A DNA stretch of 64,000 nucleotides from Selaginella moellendorffii (Eukaryota > Plantae > Lycopodiophyta): positions 1,680,457 to 1,744,456 of the forward strand of contig NW_003314293.1 in the NCBI RefSeq assembly GCF_000143415.4, in the 5' to 3' direction. This document shows, piece after piece, positions 1,778-56,194 of the stretch (the first letter of the stretch is position 1; each line of letters opens with the position of its first letter). The notes beneath the pieces were generated by a model. The model was not told where the DNA came from, made no database searches, and saw only the letters and a program-made list of their open reading frames with translations. The translations under genes were made by a program, and so were the position numbers.

Positions 1778-2103
1778 CTTCTAATAAAACGTTATTATTA
1801 TTGTTTATTATGACATAAGGAATCACAACTAGCTTACAAACGACGAAGGATAAGTTGAAGCACGAGGGGGGAAATCCGGAAATGCTGGCCTCGATCTCCA
1901 CTCTGGTTCCCGAGCAAGCGAGAGACTATCTACTCTAGCAGTCACATGCCGCACACACCACAATTTGGCAAAGCTCAAACCTTTTTTGCTCAAAACCGCT
2001 TGTTCCAGGTAAGAGCTTTCGAGAAATTTTCCAAGAAAAGCTGCAGGATAGAACCGGCCAATTTGCTGATGTTTCGATTAAAACTCGTGATTTTATTTTT
2101 TAG

Positions 2104-2199
2104 TCCTTGCTGCGGTGTGCCATACTCTGGCGTCGTTTCCAGAGGCGTTCTGTTTGATACAACGCTTGCAATCTCCCACGAGGATGCCGACCAGTTTGA
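2104..2199 (+). pseudogene. Decayed copy C (exon 3 only) of the Cys-rich peptide gene
   Basis: Follows a ...TTTTTAG acceptor and ends NACNLPRGCRPV*. The upstream part is frameshifted. Confidence 0.7.
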
Positions 2200-2430
2200 C
2201 ATCCAGAACAAAATTGCTGAATAAAGCATTGGTGCAAGTGAGTTTGTGAAACCTCCTAAAGAAGTCAAAGATCAAAAGACAAGGTGGATGCTGCTTGATT
2301 TTTTTTTTCGTTTGATTACACCTATCGCCCAGCTTTCCATTGTTATGCAGTGTTGAGTGGCTTCCAAGTTGAAAGTCCGGTCGGTTTCAAATTACTATGA
2401 AGTTTTTGCTGTATTTCACAAGTAGAAGAA

Positions 2431-2667
2431 CTTGTGGTGCTGGTGGTTCTCTTGGATATAATCTTGGCTTGATCGTGAAGATTCCTTGTCATTCTTGTTA
2501 ATATATCAGGGGTTGGGATGAAAGCTGAAGCTCCTGCACAGCGGGGGCTCCTCCAGCGAGGTGAGCGATCAATCTTACAAGTTTAGATTCCCAATTCGAT
2601 ATAACTTTGGAGATCTTTTCTAGTTTGCCCGACTGTGTGCCAGTTGCCAAGATGCCGGCAAGTGTAA
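2431..2667 (+). pseudogene. Decayed copy D of the Cys-rich peptide gene
   Basis: Closely matches 1505-1777 including both introns. Intron-1 donor is mutated GT>AT and exon 3 has an internal deletion (CPTVCQLPRCRQV*). Confidence 0.75.
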
Positions 2668-2727
2668 TCTGACATAGTCCCATAAGGAACTACATTATTG
2701 TTTGTTGTGTTAAATACCACGAGCCGG

Positions 2728-2769
2728 TTTAGGGTTTAGGGTCTACGGTTTAGGGTTTAGGGTTTAGGG
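2728..2769 (+). repeat. Interstitial plant telomeric repeat (TTTAGGG)x6, one unit degenerate
   Basis: TTTAGGG TTTAGGG TCTACGG TTTAGGG TTTAGGG TTTAGGG read directly. Confidence 0.85.
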
Positions 2770-5190
2770 CATACAAGGTCAACGTCGTTTTCTTCTCTTT
2801 GCAAAAGCGCTTGTCCAGGAAGCCTTGCAAGCTCCGGGGATTTTCAGTTGGATTGTTGGTTGAAGCTCTGGGGATTTGTGTGCCGCAGGAGTGGTTTGCT
2901 GGAAAGAAGATCTGCAACATGTTGAACTTCCACTCCTTCCTCCAAGAAGTGGAAGATCTCACACTGTTTTGAACTTCTGGATTCGATGGTGGTGGAGGTG
3001 GCAAGAACACAAGCTTGTCCATGGCAGGGAAAGGCTCAAACTATCCACATCTTGCTGGTTGGCTTGCCTGGAAGCAGCAAGTCTTCTGTTGAGCAATTGC
3101 CATAAACTATATTGAATTGTTGGAGAATGATCAGATTCAACTTGCTATGGCTACTGCAAGAGTGGTTTTCCAGCAAGAGAGCTTACAATGGATAAAGTGT
3201 GCTTCATAATGACCATTTTACTTGATTTAATTAATTTATCATTTGGTAAGTTGATTGATCAAGTCATTAGTTTATTAGTCAATTCATGAATCTATTAAAT
3301 TCACAAGTTGATTGATCATTTCATGAGTTGGTTGGGTTGGTTGATGAGTTGATGATTCAATTAATATATAGTTTCTAAACACACTCTTTACTTAAATCTA
3401 TGTAAGAGCTTAAACTACCATCTCTGTTGCTCTCTGGAATAAAAGTATAATTCAAGATGTTGTAGAGCATAAATAATATTCTTAGAACATGAGTGGATAT
3501 TCTATATGGGGTATATCTTCCCTTGCAAGTTTAGAGTATGAGTGATTGAGGTGATCATGGTGGGATAAATCAATTCCTAGCTAGCCCATTCAAATTCCAT
3601 GTGATTTTTTTTGTTCTTAGCACAATTCTAATTCTCAATGAGATTCACTGCCATTATCACAAATTCTTTAATTTCTTTAAGTTTTCTTTGGGTTTTGATA
3701 CTCATGGCTAAAAACTTTAATTTTCAGACTTGTAAATTTGTGATACCAAAGGATAGAAAGATAATATACAAGCCCATCTACTCAATTTGCTGAAAAATAA
3801 AAAACTAAGGTTTAATTTATAAATCATGCAATTAAATTTGAGACAAGACCATTAGTGGTGTATGCTCTTTATAAGTTACTATTTTCTCAGATCTTTTTGG
3901 CTCTTAAAAAATCTACTTTCAAGGTTTTTAGTTTTTGCTTATTCAATCCATTCTCTTGCAAGATTTTGTCATTTCTTGATTGTTTAAGTGGTTTTTTCTC
4001 TTTGTCTTGTGATTTCTTTGAGTGTTTTTTCTTCCTTTCTAGAAAGAACTTGAGGAGAGCTTCTTCTTGAGTCCTATCTTGAATCTCATATCATTTTTAT
4101 TTTTTTTGGTATTGTTTATGAGGAATTTAGAACTTTCTCGCTGTTTATTTGCTTGGATTTTGTAAGATTTGTTTTGTCCAAGAGCTAAAGCAGGTATTAG
4201 CTTTCCAAAAGAGTTTTATCTCATGAGTTTTGGTGCTATATGTCAAGAGATCTAGTGTCATTTCTCTTCTTGCATTATCTATGGGAAGTTTGGAGCTTTC
4301 TCACCTATTTTTTACTCGAATTTTTGTGTTGTGGGCTAGATTTCTAGGAGTGCATCTCAATCAATGAGTTTTCTTTATTAGTTGCATTTTTCAAGTGTGA
4401 GCATTTTGATCTTGACATGGAGCAACTAACAATCCACTTTCTCCTGTGTACTATAGCTCTACCTATGTTTAATCCTACTTCAGGGTTTCTTTTAGAGACC
4501 ATATTACAATTTTATCAAATCATATCTTGATTGATGGGGTATAATATTTGGAGTTCACAAGCTTGTTGGCAGGGAAAATGCAGGCTTTAATAGATGAAGA
4601 TTTCCTTATACTGCTTCTTTTGTTTCATAAGGTGTTTGAAATTGAGAAGGGCTCACAAGAGCTGTTTTGTGAGCTTTTCCTCTTCTAGGGCAGCAACAAA
4701 TGTAAACTTGATTACATGCTGTGATTTAAACAATACTAGAAGATTTGTCAAAGGAAGGAGGTAAGGGAGGAGAATTTGGTTATTTCCACATATATGACCA
4801 AACTCTAGCTAGGGATTTAGTAAAAAGTGGCCAAGCAATGCCATTCCAAGTGTATAACCATGCCATGGAGATTGAGAATGATTTAATATATGAGTTAAGT
4901 GTTTCTAGTGTGGTAGAGATGCTTGGGCCATCTCTTACTATAGTAGTGTATGCCATCTCTAGGACATAACTGCCAACCTTTAATGCCATTATGGCACCAG
5001 CCACAAGCTCTTTCATTCCCATCATGGACTTAGCCATGTTAGAGCTTTAACAATACAAGTCTCTATTACTGCAATAACAAAACTTTATACTCCAACAACA
5101 ATGGCAAGAGTGGCTTCTATAAGAACTCCACACTTTTAGGGTACAAGCCTCTTCTCATGTCATTATTGCTCACACTATGATTTTCAAACA
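2770..5190. mobile_element. Degenerate AT-rich, probably retroelement-derived DNA
   Basis: AT-rich and CpG-depleted, with only short broken ORFs and no spliced gene structure. No diagnostic domain confidently seen. Confidence 0.35.
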
Positions 5191-48439: not shown

Positions 48440-49310
48440 TTTCTACAAAATAGTGGCTACATCCATTTCCTGGAATCAGTGGTACAAGAGATCATAGACC
48501 AGGTCACTGTTCATTCAATGCAACGTGTATATACATTACTCAATGTCCCTTAGGGATTAATACAACAAAGATTCACTCATGGTGCTACTCTCTCAACAAA
48601 ACCATCGTGCTATCTCTTGCTTAATGGTGATCACTGCCTTCCAACTGAGGCTGCTGGGGTCGTCGCCTCTGCAAAGCGTTCAGTGCCAGATCACCTCGTT
48701 TTGCCTCCTTTACTACAGTGTTTAGTGATCTTCATTTCCATTTGACCCCTCCATTGTTTCATTCAAGAACAATTGTGTTAAACCGAAAAAAAAAAAGAGA
48801 AAGTTAATTAACCCTAGGCTGTAGAGAGAAGAAATAAGGTTGTAAACAGCTAGACCATCCTCTTTTCATATTGCCTCTGCAGAAAAACGTACACATAAGA
48901 ACCAAAAGAAGCCTCCAGGACGGGCCCCAGTTTCACGAAGCAACGCCTGCCATAAAATTAGCACCGGAAATCATCCCGACGAGACAAGCGGTGCCAGAGA
49001 TGCTCCGTGAAAAAGGATAAACTGGGAAAAAAAGAGAAGAGCATGAGAGAAACATTGGTGTACTCACTGCTCGTTATCTCCGGAGCAAGACTCCCAAACA
49101 TGGTCAGTGATCGTCTCGGCCATGCTGCTACGGAACTGTCGGAAAATCACTCCTCCTTGTATTTTACCCGGAAGAGCAACCCGGTGAGAATGATCACTCC
49201 AGTGGCAAGGATGAGGAATGGCGATGGCGTGCCTCCAGTGCTAAGTACATTCCTCCTCAAGTTCCCATCAAGCGAAGAATCAATTACGAGCGAAGCTTTC
49301 TTTCTTTTCT
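48440..49310. pseudogene. Rearranged partial duplicate of NOM1
   Basis: 48440-48520 and 48755-49170 match 46590-47180 in direct orientation. 49180-49310 matches 47260-47540 inverted, with deletions. Confidence 0.8.
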
Positions 49311-49384
49311 TTTAAGGGCGATAAACCACTGCCGCTGGAAATGCCCGCCCACCCCGCCCCAGAGCCAAGTGCTCAAGTCGTAAA

Positions 49385-50125
49385 TCAACACCTTCCCTTC
49401 AAAAAAAGATGACGAGATTGCCCTCTACGTGGATAGAACAACAATAAACGATTCCGACTGTGTAGCGCCCGGGATACACTAGTTTGATCAAGCATGGCTT
49501 CATAAAGCACTGCCGAGACTGTAACCAAGCCACCCTTGTCATCAACCATACCCATCAACTCCGCAGTCCCCCGACTCACGGTTGCCTCCTGCATACGCCC
49601 AGCCGCTTGCAAAGTATCGCTGGCCATTGTGCTCCCACAGCCTCGTGGTGCACAGTCCTGGGAGTGGTAAAACGCAGCGCAGGAAATCTCCATCTCGTTC
49701 AATCTTGTCCTCCAGGCCCGCTGTAATCCTCAGGTTGTGCACGACTTCCCCGGTGCTCCACCTGGCGCGGCCAAAGTCGTAAAATCCCAGGATGGTGAGA
49801 TCATAGAATCGAGTGGTGCTACTCTTGGGTCAGTGGATTGCCCACCACCATGTGGGCAACTCGTCATCAGAAGGATGGACGACCAACTTTGGCGTCCTGA
49901 CGATGCATACCAGGCCACCAGCAGAAGCAACGAGTTGTTGAGCGAAATGAAATTGTCGCGGTTTGCAAACTTCACGCTGTTGTTGGGCCGTGATGGATGG
50001 CAGCAGTCGCCGTGAGAGAAGGAGCTGGTCATAACCCGAGGTGATTCCTTGTCGCCACTGTTTTCGCACCACTGCCGGCCAAAGGATGGATTTGCTGATG
50101 ATGGACTTCCATGACTTACTAACGG
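49385..50125 (-). pseudogene. F-box family pseudogene fragment
   Basis: VSKSWKSIISK, QQLVASAGGLVCIV and RLWEHNGQRYFASGWAYAGG in shifted frames. Confidence 0.65.
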
Positions 50126-50199
50126 GAAAAAAAAATCGCTTTTGATCTATAGAAACTTTTCTAGATCAAGAAGAAAAAGTAGAAGACCAGAAGCTCGCC

Positions 50200-51466
50200 T
50201 CAGCTAAAGTCTATGATCGTAGCAAGACGTTCTCTAAGTTTCCTCTTTTTCTGTTTCTCCGAAGAAGTTAGTCGCCTCCTGTCATGGCCCGGGACTCCCA
50301 TGAATTTGTGACTCTTCGTTCTGAGCAGCCGCAGGATCACAAGCGTAAGAACTTACGCCAAGCCCAATCACAATGCTCACCTGAACTTAAACGATATGAA
50401 CCTCTTCGTTGGCTTGTGCTTCTCGAGTAGCTCCGCCGTCTTATTCGTGAAACCGAGCTTCTCATAAATCTTCCCGATCCTGATTATTGTCGCTGGGTCC
50501 GGCCTCGTTCCTGAAAGCTCCAGCTCTTTAAACATCTACGACCACAAAACAAACGCGTCACCACCACGATCGCAAAACGTTTCGTATACCTACCTTGATA
50601 GCTTTGTCTGGCAATGCTCGCCGATCATACATCGTGATCATTCGAGCATACATAACTCTGGGGACGCTCTCTTGTTTCGTCACCACAAAAGTATGCCAGA
50701 TGTGCTCAACCTCGTCCACCCTGCCATCAATGTCCAAAGCCCGGAGGAGACATCCATAAGTGTTCATTGTAAAGCCATGGCCTTTGCTAAACATCCACTT
50801 GATCACCTGTGACGTTTTTCCAGTCAGATAGAACAGAGAACTCACAGAACTTACGTGAATAACTCTGCGCCATTGTTTCAGCCGGAAGAGCCTGTGAGTG
50901 GCCATCTTGATTGTATGCAGAGGAAATCTTAGCTCCCAGGCAATCCATGTATCGCAAGCGGCCCAAATCTCCTCTTTGACATCGGGCAGTGGCAAAACCT
51001 GTGCACGAAGTTCTGAAAGATCCAGAAGAAATAAAAAGAAAAATAGAGAGTGAAGAACTTACTGCATCCACCAAGTCCCGTGCTCTTTGCATCTTAGTTC
51101 TTCTCGGGAGCACATCATAAGGCGCTTTAGTTCTTTCATTCGGAACTTCATTCTGCCTGCTCTGGAAAAAATCGTAGTTCAATCAATCAGATCTAACTCC
51201 ACACGCCCCGAAAGCATCGAAACTTACTTCCAACTTGCCACATTCTCCAGCGCCAGAACCTTGTTCGTCGTAGGCCCAAGCCGGAGCTTCTTGTGCCTCA
51301 CAAAGATCAAGCTGTGCTTCGCGTCTTGACGCCGGGCAAGAAAATCGCGCACGCACGGCGCGCTGCTCTCAACGCCGAATAGAGCGCAGCTGGAGAGGCC
51401 CCGCGATCGAAAGCCAGATATCCCAGCTCGCGCAGCAGCGGCATTCCGCCATAGCCACTGTCTCAT
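50200..51466 (-). CDS. Small intron-containing PPR protein, probably organelle-targeted
   Basis: KEEIWAACDTWIAWELRFPL, QWRRVIHVIKWMFSKGHGFTMNTYGCLLRALD, FKELELSGTRPD. The 3' end is either the stop at 50377 or, with one more intron, 50200. Confidence 0.8.
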
Positions 51467-51770
51467 GAAAGAACCCTAAATCTAGCACAAAGGGACGAAT
51501 ATCCCTCTCGTTTGTTTTTAAATTTAGCGCCAACTTTGCCGTTCGAGCATGTTGTCAGAAATTCCGAGAACAAATTAGCGCCAGAAATCTCAAAGAACAC
51601 TGGGGCGATTTAATTCAGCATTGTCAATTTCTTTGCAAGTAATTACAAGATTTATCCAAGAGAGGATGCAATTGAGCCAGAAAATAACGAAGTGTTGGGC
51701 GACGATTAAGAAACAAGCATGAATGGCAAGAAAAAAAAATCAATAGAAGCAAAACCACCATAGCTCCACC

Positions 51771-52544
51771 CTAGTTTCCAACTGGATCTGGCCCCTCCGG
51801 AACGCTATGGAACACGGTTCCAAAGTTGTGGAGTGGATTCGGACCCGCTGGAACCAAGTGAAGATCGATCTCGTCGTGGACGGGGCTGGGACCGGACGGA
51901 GGCGATGGCGTAACCTTGGGCTTGGAGACGACGAACTGGCCTTCTCCATTGTGAACTGGGCTCGGACCGGCCGGAGGAGATGGCGTTGTGCGGGGCTTGG
52001 AGACGACGAACGGGCCTTCTCCATTGTGAACTGGGCTCGGACCGGCCGGAGGAGATGGCGTTGTGCGGGGCTTGGAGACGACGAACGGGCCTTCTCCATT
52101 GTGGACTGGGCTGGGACCGGCCGGAGGAGATGGCGTTGTGCGGGGCTTGGAGACGACGAACGGGCCCTCTCCATTGTGGACTGGGCTCGGACCGGCCGGA
52201 GGAGATGGCGTTGTGCGGGGCTTGGAGACGACGAACTGGCCCTCTCCATTGTGGACTGGGCTCGGACCGGCCGGAGGAGATGGCGTCCGGGGCTTCGAGA
52301 CCTCAAACTGCGATCCACCGTTACCACCAGGGCTGGGACCGGTTGGCGGAGAGATGAATTCCATTGCCACCTCGTCCAGATCCTTCGAGTTCCCGCCCGG
52401 ATTAGGCCCCGTTGGTGGCGAGAGCAAAACCACATCGTCGAGACGCTGGATCATCCTGGAGGAGTCGACCACCACCGCGGCCATGAGAGCAGCGACGAGC
52501 AGCAGCAGCAGCATTTTGTTGGTCAAGGACGCGATCAAGGCCAT
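51771..52544 (-). CDS. Secreted multi-domain CLE/IDA-like peptide precursor (10 dodecapeptide motifs)
   Basis: ATG at 52544 and a signal peptide, then LSPPTGPNPGGN, ISPPTGPSPGGN, PSPPAGPSPVHN x5, PSPPSGPSPVHD, HLVPAGPNPLHN, HSVPEGPDPVGN*. TATATAAA upstream near 52665-52672. Confidence 0.85.
   Translation of the reverse strand: MALIASLTNKMLLLLLVAALMAAVVVDSSRMIQRLDDVVLLSPPTGPNPGGNSKDLDEVAMEFISPPTGPSPGGNGGSQFEVSKPRTPSPPAGPSPVHNGEGQFVVSKPRTTPSPPAGPSPVHNGEGPFVVSKPRTTPSPPAGPSPVHNGEGPFVVSKPRTTPSPPAGPSPVHNGEGPFVVSKPRTTPSPPAGPSPVHNGEGQFVVSKPKVTPSPPSGPSPVHDEIDLHLVPAGPNPLHNFGTVFHSVPEGPDPVGN
51880..52320. repeat. Coding tandem repeat, 75-bp unit, about 6 copies
   Basis: Near-identical GGGCTTGGAGACGACGAAC...CTCCATTGTG...GGACCGGCCGGAGGAGATGGCG units, each encoding 25 aa. 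Confidence 0.95.
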
Positions 52545-52865
52545 TGCGATTGTAGTAAACTCTTCCACGAAGATTGGAGCGAGGGATCCCCGAAGAACTT
52601 CCCAAAAGGATTGATCAGAGAACTACTGCGCCGTGATCTGTGCTTGACACTCTTGTATAAAGTGTTTATATACCCGGGCCTCGATGTGCCAAGCATGGAA
52701 GCTACGCCATATCCAGCTCCGCCTCCGCACCTTTTGAGGACGAGGTATATCGTCTCATCAAAAATAACGCGAGATCGTCTTATTGTGAATTAAGAGAATA
52801 TCGGTCAACGATCTTGCTCGCCCTAGCGAGTCAAAGGACGGTCAAAACGGGGGACTTTCGGAAAT

Positions 52866-52937
52866 GCCTTTATAGCTCAGTGGTAGAGCGTCAGTCTTGT
52901 AAACTGAAGGCCTGGAGTTCAATCCTCCATGGAGGCA
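52866..52937 (+). tRNA. tRNA-Thr (UGU)
   Basis: GCCTTTATAGCTCAGTGGTAGAGCGTCAGTCTTGTAAACTGAAGGCCTGGAGTTCAATCCTCCATGGAGGCA forms a cloverleaf with anticodon TGT, followed by TTTT. Confidence 0.92.
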
Positions 52938-53004
52938 TTTACTAAAAAGACCCTTTGGCTAGTCAAAGAGTCAATGGTAGTCAACTGAGTCTTTTCGTGC
53001 AAAT

Positions 53005-53076
53005 GCCTTTATACCTCAGTGGTAGAGCGTCAGTCTTGTAAACTCAAGGTCTGGAGTTCAATCCTCCGTGAAGGCA
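53005..53076 (+). pseudogene. Second, degenerate tRNA-Thr (UGU) copy
   Basis: Same sequence with G10>C (D-stem mismatch), a C:C mismatch in the anticodon stem, and no immediate T-run. Confidence 0.7.
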
Positions 53077-53233
53077 GGGAAAAAGTCCTTTTCATTTATT
53101 TTAGTACGTTTTGCCTAGTCCCGGGTTCGAATCCGGGCCACAAGTCTAGAAAAGGCCGAGATAAGGAAAGCGTTCGTACTAAGAGAGGCGTTGTTAGGGT
53201 TGCAAGGGTAGGGAAAGAGAGAGAGCGAGGAGG

Positions 53234-53820
53234 ATGTCGACCAAGGTAAAGCTCCGCAGCAGCGATGGCGAGATGTTTGAGGTGGACGAGGCCGTGGCGC
53301 TCGAGTCCCAGACGGTGAAGAACATGATCGAGGACACTGGGTCGGACGCGCCGATACCCTTGCCCAACGTCCCAAGCAAGATCCTGGCCAAGGTGATCGA
53401 GTACTCCAAGTACCACGTCGATGCCCAGAAGAGCGGCGACGACTCCAAGGTCGTGCCCACCGAGGAGGAGATCAAGGCCTGGGACGCCGAGTTCGTCAAG
53501 GTCGATCAGGCGACGCTCTTCGACCTCATCCTGGTAGGATTTCTTCGTTCGATTTCTTCCCCCCTTTTTCTCTCGCTTTTCTCGTTTTGGGTCTTGAGCT
53601 TTCGACTGACAATCGATTTGGGTGATCTGGTTTTGCGTTGTTCCAGGCCGCGAACTATCTCAACATCCGGAACTTGCTGGATCTGACGTGCCAAACCGTG
53701 GCGGACATGATCAAGGGCAAGACCCCGGAGGAGATCCGCAAGACTTTCAACATCAAGAACGATTTCACGCCCGAGGAAGAGGAGGAGGTCCGGCGGGAGA
53801 ACCAGTGGGCGTTCGAGTAA
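53234..53820 (+). CDS. SKP1: SKP1; intron 53534-53646
   Basis: [74 protein letters not shown]. Confidence 0.97.
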
Positions 53821-54564
53821 GAGAGGAGAAAACAAAGGATTCGCGTTTTAGCGTCGTCGGCGTCTATCTCCACCTCTCTCTCTCTCTCCTCCCTCTGTTT
53901 GTTTGCTTCCTATTGAACGAAAGGTTTTGTTATGGCTTAAAAATTGTGTAAAAGTTAATTCCTTTAAATATTTGGCCGGTTATTATGAATATACTCTTTT
54001 TTGGGAGTATGCGGATCTCTCTAACTTAAAGTTAAGTTTTGTTCGTTCGAAACTTAAAAGTTAAGTTTACGCTACAGAGATTCGAACCCTGGAAATAATT
54101 GGGTTAAATAATTTTCCGGTTAAGCTTTTAACTTGTACTTAACAGTTAAGTTTATGCTAGTGAGATTCGAACCCTGGCCGGATGGGCTGGAAGGAATCGA
54201 ACCCGCGACGTTTGACTAGTTCTTCTACGTGTAAGCTATTTTGCCCCTTCTATTTTTTCTGTGCGCGTAAGAACGCGGTTTCACGGGCCATCGCCAGGGA
54301 CGACTGTGGAGGGCGTGCGCAGCGATCTATCATCACCTCCGGCAGCTCGATCTACGATTTCCAGGGTAGCCGCCGCTTTGCGCGTCGATTTCTAAGCTCA
54401 GGTGAGATCTTCCAGATCTACAAACCCTTGCTCGGTAGAATCTTAGCTCTTTGTGCTTGGCCGCAAGTGCATTCCATTCTAGTGCCGGTTTTCTTGAGAT
54501 TCTCTTCGCAGAGGGCTAAAAATCTGGTGGTGTCTTGCAGTGTGGAATTTGGAAGCCGGGCACA

Positions 54565-55629
54565 CTGGCGACCTTCTGGAACTTGCCGGACGAGCCGGTA
54601 GATCACAAGGCGGTGGATTGGAAATGGCGAGGCACTCCCTCGCTCCAATCGCTCCAGGCTTTCAAGCAGCACCACCAGGCGCAGCTACCAGTCCTGGGCA
54701 AGCAAAAGTTTGACCCCAAGCCGCGGATCACTGTCAACGAGGTGAAGAAAGTGGCCAGCGATCTCAAGCGCGGTGGTGGTGTCGGACTCGGGAATCCAAA
54801 GCAGTCGTTCCTCGAGCAGAAGCAAGCGAATCTAGAGAAGCAGCAGGGATCCTCGGGGCTTGACAAGCGTTTCAAGACGCTTCCACCGTCGGAGATGCTA
54901 CCACGGAATGAAACGCTTGGTGGCTATATCTTTGTTTGCAACAATGATACCATGCAAGAGGACCTCAAGCGCCAGCTCTTTGGTAAGTCCTCTCTCGTTA
55001 TTTCTCTGTCTTTCTTCGTAGCTATGACTGAAAGCTTGTTTTTTTTTCTTTTGCGCTTTCAGGCTTGCCTCAAAGGTACCGTGACTCTGTTCGTGCTATC
55101 CAGCCGGGCCTGCCTTTGTTTCTTTACAACTATACTACGCACCAGCTTCACGGGGTGTACGAGGTAAAGCTACCTCTCTCGCAGGATTTGTGACACTCAT
55201 GTTGATGGCGAGTCCAAACTTTTGCGTGACTCTACAGGCTGCGAGTTTTGGGGGCTCAAACATAGATCCTACTGCGTGGGAAGACAAGAAGTGTCGTGGA
55301 GAATCTCGGTTCCCTGCACAGGTTTGTCTTCACTTCTTTCTCATTTGCTTCTCGAGCGTGTGTGAGGATCCGGGCTTAACTTTCTCTCGCTTTGTCCTCT
55401 CCAGGTTCGCATAAGAGTTAGAATGAACTACAAGCCTCTGGAGGAGGATGCTTTCCGCCCCGTGCTCCATCACTACGACGGTCCCAAGTTTCGTCTCCAA
55501 TTGTCCGTCCCAGAGGTGTGCTGTCCTCTCTCGGCTCTTGATTTTGTTTCTCATCCCTTTGGTTTGTTCTTTCGTCGGTTGCAGACGTTGATGCTGCTAG
55601 ATCTCTTCTCAGACAAAGGCTCGGCTTGA
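54565..55629 (+). CDS. DCD (development and cell death; B2/NRP) domain protein, multi-exon, putative CUG start
   Basis: KRFKTLPPSEMLPRNETLGGYIFVCNNDTMQEDLKRQLFG, AASFGGSNIDPTAWEDKKCRGESRFPAQ, PLEEDAFRPVLHHYDGPKFRLQLS. The start position is inferred. Confidence 0.85.
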
Positions 55630-56122: not shown

Positions 56123-56194
56123 GGGCATCTGGTCTAGTGGTATGATTCTCGCTTAGGGTGCGAGAGGTCCCGAGTTCAATTCTCGGAATGCCCC
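56123..56194 (+). tRNA. tRNA-Pro (AGG)
   Basis: Identical to the copy at 16100-16171 except T7>C, which gives a C7:A66 mismatch in the acceptor stem. Confidence 0.9.

Follow-up and report, generated by a model that had tools for sequence, protein, structure and literature searches.

In a 64,000-nucleotide stretch of the Selaginella moellendorffii genome (RefSeq assembly GCF_000143415.4, contig NW_003314293.1, positions 1,680,457 to 1,744,456 of the forward strand; hereafter the window, numbered from its first letter), a single-exon nuclear gene on the minus strand (51771..52544) probably encodes a secreted polyprotein precursor of proline-rich signalling peptides. The peptide motifs, or modules, of this precursor would belong to the CLE/IDA superclass. 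They are of mixed classes: two CLE, six IDA-like and two intermediate modules are carried by the same protein, and this mixed architecture is real. The coding sequence (257 codons and a stop) extends from an ATG at 52544 to a stop at 51771-51773 and gives a product of 257 amino acids (aa). It is the same as the NCBI gene call and as the published protein Sm416983, and the annotation of S. moellendorffii GCA_000143415.2 scaffold GL377597.1 includes exactly the same single-exon product.

A preliminary description of this DNA had proposed a secreted precursor with ten 12-residue Pro/Gly motifs, and we found the positions, the signal peptide and the sequences exactly as described. At the N-terminus, Lys10 precedes a hydrophobic core of 16 residues (aa 11-26), and values for SignalP (0.864) and TargetP (0.946) have been published for exactly this protein (PMC7552357). 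These indicate a signal peptide at about aa 1-28 (52461..52544) and agree with the N-terminal secretion signal by which CLE precursors are recognised. The modules are numbered u1 to u10 from the N-terminus and are all on the minus strand. The intermediate modules are u1 (LSPPTGPNPGGN; aa 41-52, 52389..52424) and u2 (ISPPTGPSPGGN; aa 64-75, 52320..52355), the latter being an old duplicate of u1 to judge from their nucleotides. Five identical IDA-like modules, u3 to u7 (PSPPAGPSPVHN), occupy 51948..52283; they begin at aa 88, 113, 138, 163 and 188, that is, at nucleotides 52283, 52208, 52133, 52058 and 51983. The sixth, u8 (PSPPSGPSPVHD; aa 213-224, 51873..51908), has an SGPS core, is preceded by KPK-VT and is the oldest IDA-like unit. 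Two CLE modules complete the protein. These are u9 (HLVPAGPNPLHN; aa 229-240, 51825..51860), with His at position 1, and the H-type u10 (HSVPEGPDPVGN; aa 246-257, 51774..51809), whose final residue is the last codon ahead of the stop, so that the protein ends on a CLE motif.

Tandem Repeats Finder (TRF) identifies a tandem array of 5.5 copies of a 75-bp (25-codon) unit at 51876..52286 (minus strand; 94% matches). Each unit consists of a 12-aa IDA-like module and a 13-aa spacer, GEG[QP]FVVSKPRTT. The ten modules have the common core P-x-G-P-[S/N/D]-P-x-[H/G]-[N/D]. When the mature part was shuffled 100,000 times with its composition preserved, this core (P.GP[SND]P.[HG][ND]) occurred at most once per shuffle compared with the ten occurrences observed, and no such motif is present in other frames or places of the 64-kb window. 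Tandem duplication has produced the five identical copies recently, and the precursor should therefore be regarded as carrying about five independent motif kinds and not ten.

To classify the modules, each was compared by identity and BLOSUM62 score with twelve published reference peptides, eight of which are CLE peptides. The scores uphold the three kinds of module distinguished in the preliminary description (u9 and u10 as CLE, u3 to u8 as IDA-like, u1 and u2 as intermediate). The identical modules u3 to u7 share 9/12 residues with the PVPP-type peptide PVPPSGPSPCHN (Amborella, spruce), 8/12 with MpIDA1 (EVPPQGPSPIHN) and 7/12 with AtIDA (PIPPSAPSKRHN), while their best identity to any CLE reference is 7/12. 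In terms of score, u3 to u8 do better on IDA-type peptides than on any of the eight CLE references. The mean BLOSUM62 score of the IDA-like unit is 49.5 against the IDA-type references and 35.0 against the CLE references, a contrast like that obtained with MpIDA1 itself (49.3 and 36.1). The unit also beats shuffled controls: among 100,000 shuffled versions, its best IDA-class score was reached by one and its AtIDA score by 22. The IDA class of non-flowering plants can be written xxPPxGPSPxHN (Pro-Pro at 3-4, G6-P7-S8-P9 and H11-N12). This is matched at all positions by u3 to u7 and at all save position 12 (Asp) by u8. By their residues, the repeated units are members of this broader class, which has been termed IDA in Marchantia, and are not angiosperm IDA/IDL peptides. 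A similarity had also been suggested between the first of these units and the extended IDA motif, based on its length and N-terminal Phe. For this unit the suggestion holds: F80-N99 spans 20 aa, as does the EPIP motif, and the Phe is at -8. In the five units that follow, it stands one residue further out, at -9.

The CLE motif [R/H]xxPxGP[N/D]Px[H/G][N/H], located at or near the C-terminus, is found in u9 and u10. The other eight modules fall outside it: none has Arg or His at position 1 and seven of the eight have Ser at position 8. The first comparison of the two terminal modules had been with TDIF. Their assignment as CLE modules with His1 was confirmed, but u9 is closer to AtCLE9/10 (10/12) than to TDIF (8/12) and is best described as a CLE9/10-type body with His1. 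The other, u10, is TDIF/SmCLE14-like and identical at 10/12 positions to SmCLE14 (HSVPSGPNPVGN). For u1 and u2, the best matches are a spruce (Picea abies) peptide, HVAPSGPNPGGN, and SmCLE14, at 7-8/12 (u1 has 8/12 with each). Both modules have Pro-Pro at 3-4 and lack His1. In u1, the Pro-Pro resembles that of IDA and the GPNPGGN tail that of H-type CLEs, with neither His nor Arg at position 1. Judged on these residues, u1 and u2 are truly intermediate between the classes.

Comparison of the modules at the nucleotide level provides evidence of a different type. Although u1 and u2 are alike at 10/12 residues, they share only 25/36 nucleotides, and the 11 differences are distributed as 1, 1 and 9 over codon positions 1, 2 and 3. 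Changes are found at 9 of approximately 10.5 synonymous sites and at 2 of approximately 25.5 non-synonymous sites (proportions pS 0.86 and pN 0.08; Fisher p 2e-5), and the flanks of the two modules do not align. This synonymous excess indicates that the peptide sequence is under selection. For u3 and u8 the corresponding values are pS 0.40 and pN 0.08, and the change in the spacer is conservative (Arg-Thr to Lys-Val). Only four sites are variable among u4 to u7; these copies are too recent, and dN/dS within the array is uninformative. A 328-aa open reading frame on the plus strand, overlapping the repeat, was rejected as an alternative product: u1 and u2 differ at the third codon positions of the minus-strand frame, which is also the one annotated.

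An exhaustive phmmer search covering 1.84 billion representatives gave 10 matches, one of which (P0004) is, from its modules, a convincing relative. It is O6H91_11G047900 from the lycophyte Diphasiastrum complanatum (CM055102.1:24805538-24812042, gene 2001-4505), annotated as hypothetical only. The product has 834 aa, is encoded by a single exon and has a signal-peptide-like N-terminus. Its first unit is PTPGSGPSPGGN (aa 115-126). This is followed by at least 14 units of the form xxPPSGPNPxHN or PTTPPGPNPVHN, each after LP[K/E/T/Q/A]G, an order collinear with the Selaginella precursor (GGN type first, HN-type array next). In a BLASTP comparison of the two proteins the modules alone align (best E 4e-13) and the spacers do not. 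Both are therefore lycophyte, single-exon, secreted-looking polyproteins of which only the modules are conserved. The Diphasiastrum protein differs in having Asn instead of Ser at position 8, LPKG-type flanks and no His/Arg-initial CLE module at the C-terminus. Its units alternate with a two-unit period of 63 aa, and most of them follow LPKG/LPxG, which is the IDA cleavage context.

Another match, P0005 (229 aa; ENA ERZ1034429 NODE_7512, 1740 bp, gene 792-1481), contains repeated ...PSGPNPGGN and SGSNPGGN units with NSxNLVAQV spacing. It is on a metagenome contig and looks like a further multi-module precursor of the GGN type from a plant; the gene model as called shows no signal peptide. None of the remaining matches (P0001-3 and P0006-10) contains the motif; these sequences, which are periodic or of low complexity, were rejected. 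For example, in P0001 (1984 aa, E 2.5e-39, 17 stretches) and P0009 the score is driven by the periodicity and composition of a 51-aa repeat, and these are consequently not relatives. In a word-indexed protein search the full precursor found nothing at E<=0.01 and a P0004 query returned P0004 alone; the exact precursor sequence is not in that collection.

These results bear on how the gene arose. It had been suggested that the IDA-like motifs might have arisen from CLE motifs within this one gene. However, the class xxPPxGPSPxHN is also present in Marchantia (MpIDA1), spruce and Amborella; it therefore predates the lycophytes and did not arise inside this gene. The gene either keeps an old multi-module arrangement or has assembled pre-existing module types, and the Diphasiastrum relative together with u1 and u2 fit the former better but do not prove it. 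A bolder extension, which we consider speculative and improbable, is that lycophytes keep an ancestral polyprotein supplying IDA-, TDIF- and CLV3/CLE9-type peptides and intermediates from a single transcript, feeding the HSL, PXY and CLV1/BAM receptors, and that the IDA and CLE genes of seed plants are the products of its break-up.

If the gene functions as a peptide precursor, its product would enter the secretory pathway and undergo hydroxylation at its central prolines. IDA is known to be cut at FGYLPK/GVPIPP and PSKRHN/SF (the slash marks the cut) to give a 14-mer, and the Pro at P2 is important. Upstream of the IDA-like modules the Selaginella precursor has KPR/T (u3), KPR/TT (u4 to u7) and KPK/VT (u8), at the same distance as in FGYLPK/GV. 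These positions resemble the N-terminal IDA site, with Pro at P2, a basic residue at P1 and two residues before the 12-mer. No Pro-Lys/Arg site precedes u9 or u10, and the Diphasiastrum protein has LPK/G itself. Cutting after Pro-Arg or Pro-Lys would yield 13-14-mers here too: subtilases would cleave behind this pair, which stands two residues ahead of every IDA-like module, releasing peptides such as TT+PSPPAGPSPVHN, and further cuts would occur behind the terminal Asn.

The freed peptides would act on leucine-rich repeat (LRR) receptor kinases of subfamily XI, of which S. moellendorffii has three HSL, two PXY and three CLV1/BAM members. The IDA-like modules may be directed to the three SmHSL receptors; for putative SmIDA peptides on SmHSL2, the published work consists of in-silico models only. 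The CLE modules may be directed to SmPXY and/or SmCLV1/BAM, or also to HSL receptors as is the case for AtCLE9/10 on HSL1. Since AtCLE9/10 bind both HSL1 and BAM1, u9 and the IDA-like units could share a receptor clade. Unequal crossing-over would cause the array to grow or shrink, with the result that the dose of IDA-like peptide would vary between haplotypes.

The gene is real and has already been catalogued, as the preliminary description had guessed. Exactly this protein is listed by Zhang 2020 (PMC7552357, Additional file 12) as CLE candidate Sm416983 in group 3/3C. The entry includes one motif only, HLVPAGPNPLHN at 229-240, with the flag 'Tandem FALSE', and the multi-class architecture is absent from that catalogue's record. 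The same table contains a sister protein of 207 aa, Sm420331, whose N- and C-terminal parts match those of Sm416983 with one Gln-to-Arg change and which has four IDA-like units compared with six. A contig from sequencing run X6 bears this diagnostic change (52309 T>C), and Sm420331 is for this reason most likely the other haplotype of a heterozygous assembly. The occurrence of four and six units in the two models contradicts the idea that the precursor would release its ligands at a fixed ratio. Hirakawa and Bowman 2015 state that there are five H-type CLE sequences in SmCLE12-15 of Miwa 2009; one of these four genes must therefore have two H-type motifs, as has the present gene. A full-text literature search with six module strings found no paper, a search by gene number gave nothing relevant and the modules are not present in the iScience 2026 supplements. 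The catalogue paper is itself inconsistent concerning another IDA-like candidate, MA_9094901g0010, which is attributed to Marchantia polymorpha in the main text and to Picea abies in Table S9 (PMC7552357). According to the table, the statement concerning a 'bryophyte missing link' rests on a conifer gene.

A number of observations weigh against interpreting the gene as a precursor of mixed CLE and IDA-class peptides. In angiosperms, IDA/IDL are defined (Vie 2015; Shi 2019) by a prepropeptide of <100 aa with one C-terminal EPIP and an S(G/A/V)PS core, then (R/K)(R/K)HN. The Selaginella precursor has 257 aa and six internal copies, the core is AGPS in u3 to u7 (5/6) and SGPS in u8 only, PV and not (R/K)(R/K) precedes HN/HD in all IDA-like units, and u8 ends in HD whereas His-Asn is reported to be essential for IDA. 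A Pfam-A scan found no CLE/IDL match at E<=10 in a copy from which the CLE/IDL models are possibly absent, and the sole Pfam match of the protein (0.078) is meaningless. Look-alikes in the Atlas (a nematode CLE-like cluster, CEP9 precursors and an IDL5 cluster), all <0.9, and neighbouring clusters naming PF27922 CLE_plant and PF27884 IDL5, with scores of 0.74-0.82, were retained as leads only. Processing, modification and receptor binding of the precursor are all inferred. The difference between six and four copies is between two published gene models and may partly reflect repeat assembly. Furumizu 2021 reports SmIDA1-3 with sequences in the figures only and a source gene that is unnamed in the text, a further weak point; it is possible that the IDA-like modules have already been used as SmIDA1-3. 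A rival explanation is a plain multi-CLE precursor, that is, ten divergent CLE peptides acting on one promiscuous receptor type, with the IDA-likeness of u3 to u8 being a question of naming and not a sign of a second ligand class. A PSGP core and an HN end are common to CLE and IDA, PVPP-type peptides have already been treated as 'IDA-like CLE candidates' in published work, the Diphasiastrum units combine a CLE-like Asn8 with Pro-Pro at 3-4, and the catalogue places the gene in CLE group 3C (PMC7552357). Moreover, AtCLE9/10 bind an HSL receptor, and Furumizu et al. raise the speculative possibility of a lower specificity of early receptors. We nevertheless consider this explanation rather unlikely: u3 to u8 lack the Arg/His1 and Asn/Asp8 of CLE peptides, they clearly score higher on IDA-type than on CLE-type references, as does MpIDA1, and they have upstream an IDA-resembling Pro-Lys/Arg site that is not found before u9 and u10.

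The check for a transcript also counts against a functional precursor, as none was found in two RNA-seq runs and an index query. The interval 49000-52850, which ends short of the tRNA genes, was compared with four runs, and about 12% of each of two 2026 RNA-seq runs (X10 and X11) was read. In this sample there are 0 reads on 51580-52850, although the adjacent gene (50161-51479, minus strand) reaches a coverage of 10-25x in both runs and shows splicing of five introns. From run X1 ('RNA?') came one 151-nt contig of depth 2 at 51769-51910, which is no higher than its coverage at 49258-49902 where X10 and X11 are nearly without reads, and none of the indexed RNA runs contained the unique 5' part of the precursor gene (best share 0.05). 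Run X6 covers 52035-52657, but since intron sequence of the adjacent gene is present in it too, this run is probably DNA. Runs X6-X9 looked like good candidates for carrying the gene but were rejected as transcript evidence (the X6 contig enters this intron and has the other allele, and it comes from a run of unspecified type). These negatives would fit a silent or decaying relic that yields no peptide today, or a gene whose expression is confined to a very narrow cell type or condition, and the variation in repeat number between the two published gene models is compatible with such a relic. However, neither published allele has a broken reading frame, their 50-aa difference is in frame, the allele differences in the 5' part are limited to two synonymous changes and one Gln-to-Arg, and the synonymous versus non-synonymous contrasts among the modules are strong. 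Expression in few cells is, in addition, typical of CLE/IDA genes. We therefore judge this explanation to have little probability. It is still harder to accept, and indeed very improbable, that the product is a structural proline- or hydroxyproline-rich wall glycoprotein that remains unprocessed. Such a protein is suggested by the signal peptide and the tandem repeats, and also by a Pro content of 23% and the presence of 21 [A/S/T]-P dipeptides. Extensins, AGPs and PRPs are recognised by SP3-5 with Tyr cross-links, by >50% Pro+Ala+Ser+Thr (PAST) with AP/SP/TP runs, and by PPVxK repeats, and none of these is found. The mature part has 0 SPPP, 0 PPVxK, 0 Tyr/Cys/Trp, a PAST content of 43.2% and no hydrophobic C-terminal tail. 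Furthermore, conservation among the 12-mers and from Selaginella to Diphasiastrum concerns a hormone-type motif with its [H/G]-N end and not a repeat of wall-protein type, and the protein terminates exactly on a CLE motif. A secreted precursor of mixed CLE and IDA-class peptides remains the best explanation.

The surroundings of the gene are as follows. A candidate TATA box, TATATAA (52666..52672, minus strand), is situated 128 nt upstream of the ATG and a candidate poly(A) signal, ATTAAA (51609..51614, minus strand), 157 nt past the stop; both are predicted from their letters. The precursor lies between a spliced gene annotated at ~48971-51466 (minus strand) and a tandem pair of tRNA-Thr(UGU) genes (52865-52938 and 53004-53077, plus strand), which are 320 nt upstream of its ATG and precede a SKP1 homologue (53234-53820, plus strand). 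Further along is a gene with a DCD (Dev_Cell_Death) domain (54182-55544, plus strand), and two tRNA-Pro(AGG) genes occur elsewhere in the window (16099-16171, minus strand; 56123-56194, plus strand). The neighbour seen in the RNA-seq runs at 50161-51479 has introns of 48-71 nt and a faint PPR_2 match in the stored annotation. Its reads show an alternative acceptor/donor pair (51155/51161 to 51227/51228) and a 205-nt skip from 50650 to 50856 with 16 other letters instead, which looks like a haplotype indel. They also include many half-frequency single-nucleotide polymorphisms, fitting two expressed alleles.

The gene is of interest for two open questions: whether IDA and CLE have a shared origin and how receptor specificity arose in the subfamily-XI LRR kinases. 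Two earlier papers (PMC7552357, PMC8462819) proposed a link between IDA and CLE because genes that are separate resemble each other in sequence. Here IDA-class, CLE-class and intermediate modules are physically joined in a single natural precursor, which provides concrete peptides for a small receptor set (three HSL, two PXY and three CLV1/BAM in Selaginella), and a second, collinear example occurs in Lycopodiaceae, a lycophyte lineage outside Selaginellaceae. The catalogue records one motif and a non-tandem flag for this gene, and counts of multi-module precursors in non-seed plants may therefore be too low. What limits the value of the case is the lack of a detected transcript, together with the possible prior use of the IDA-like modules as SmIDA1-3.

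Among known systems, the multi-CLE precursors (Amborella and Brachypodium, PMC7552357 Table S1; PMC2254619) likewise have a signal peptide, tandem units of a spacer plus 12 aa, CLE motifs at the C-terminus and repeats that evolve by duplication. They repeat one motif type, whereas the Selaginella precursor has two CLE, six IDA-like and two intermediate modules. With IDA/IDL and the non-flowering IDA peptides (AtIDA, MpIDA1 and the PVPP type), it shares Pro-Pro at 3-4, an [S/A]GPS core, a His-Asn end and a Pro-Lys/Arg pair two residues ahead of the 12-mer, from which a 14-mer is produced in IDA. IDA/IDL precursors are, however, <100 aa with one C-terminal motif and, in angiosperms, (R/K)(R/K)HN, as opposed to six internal copies followed by a CLE end. 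Multiple copies of a ligand motif are also found in CEP9 (five CEP motifs) and in PIP2, PIP3 and PIPL1 (two SGPS motifs), but in each of these the copies belong to a single family.

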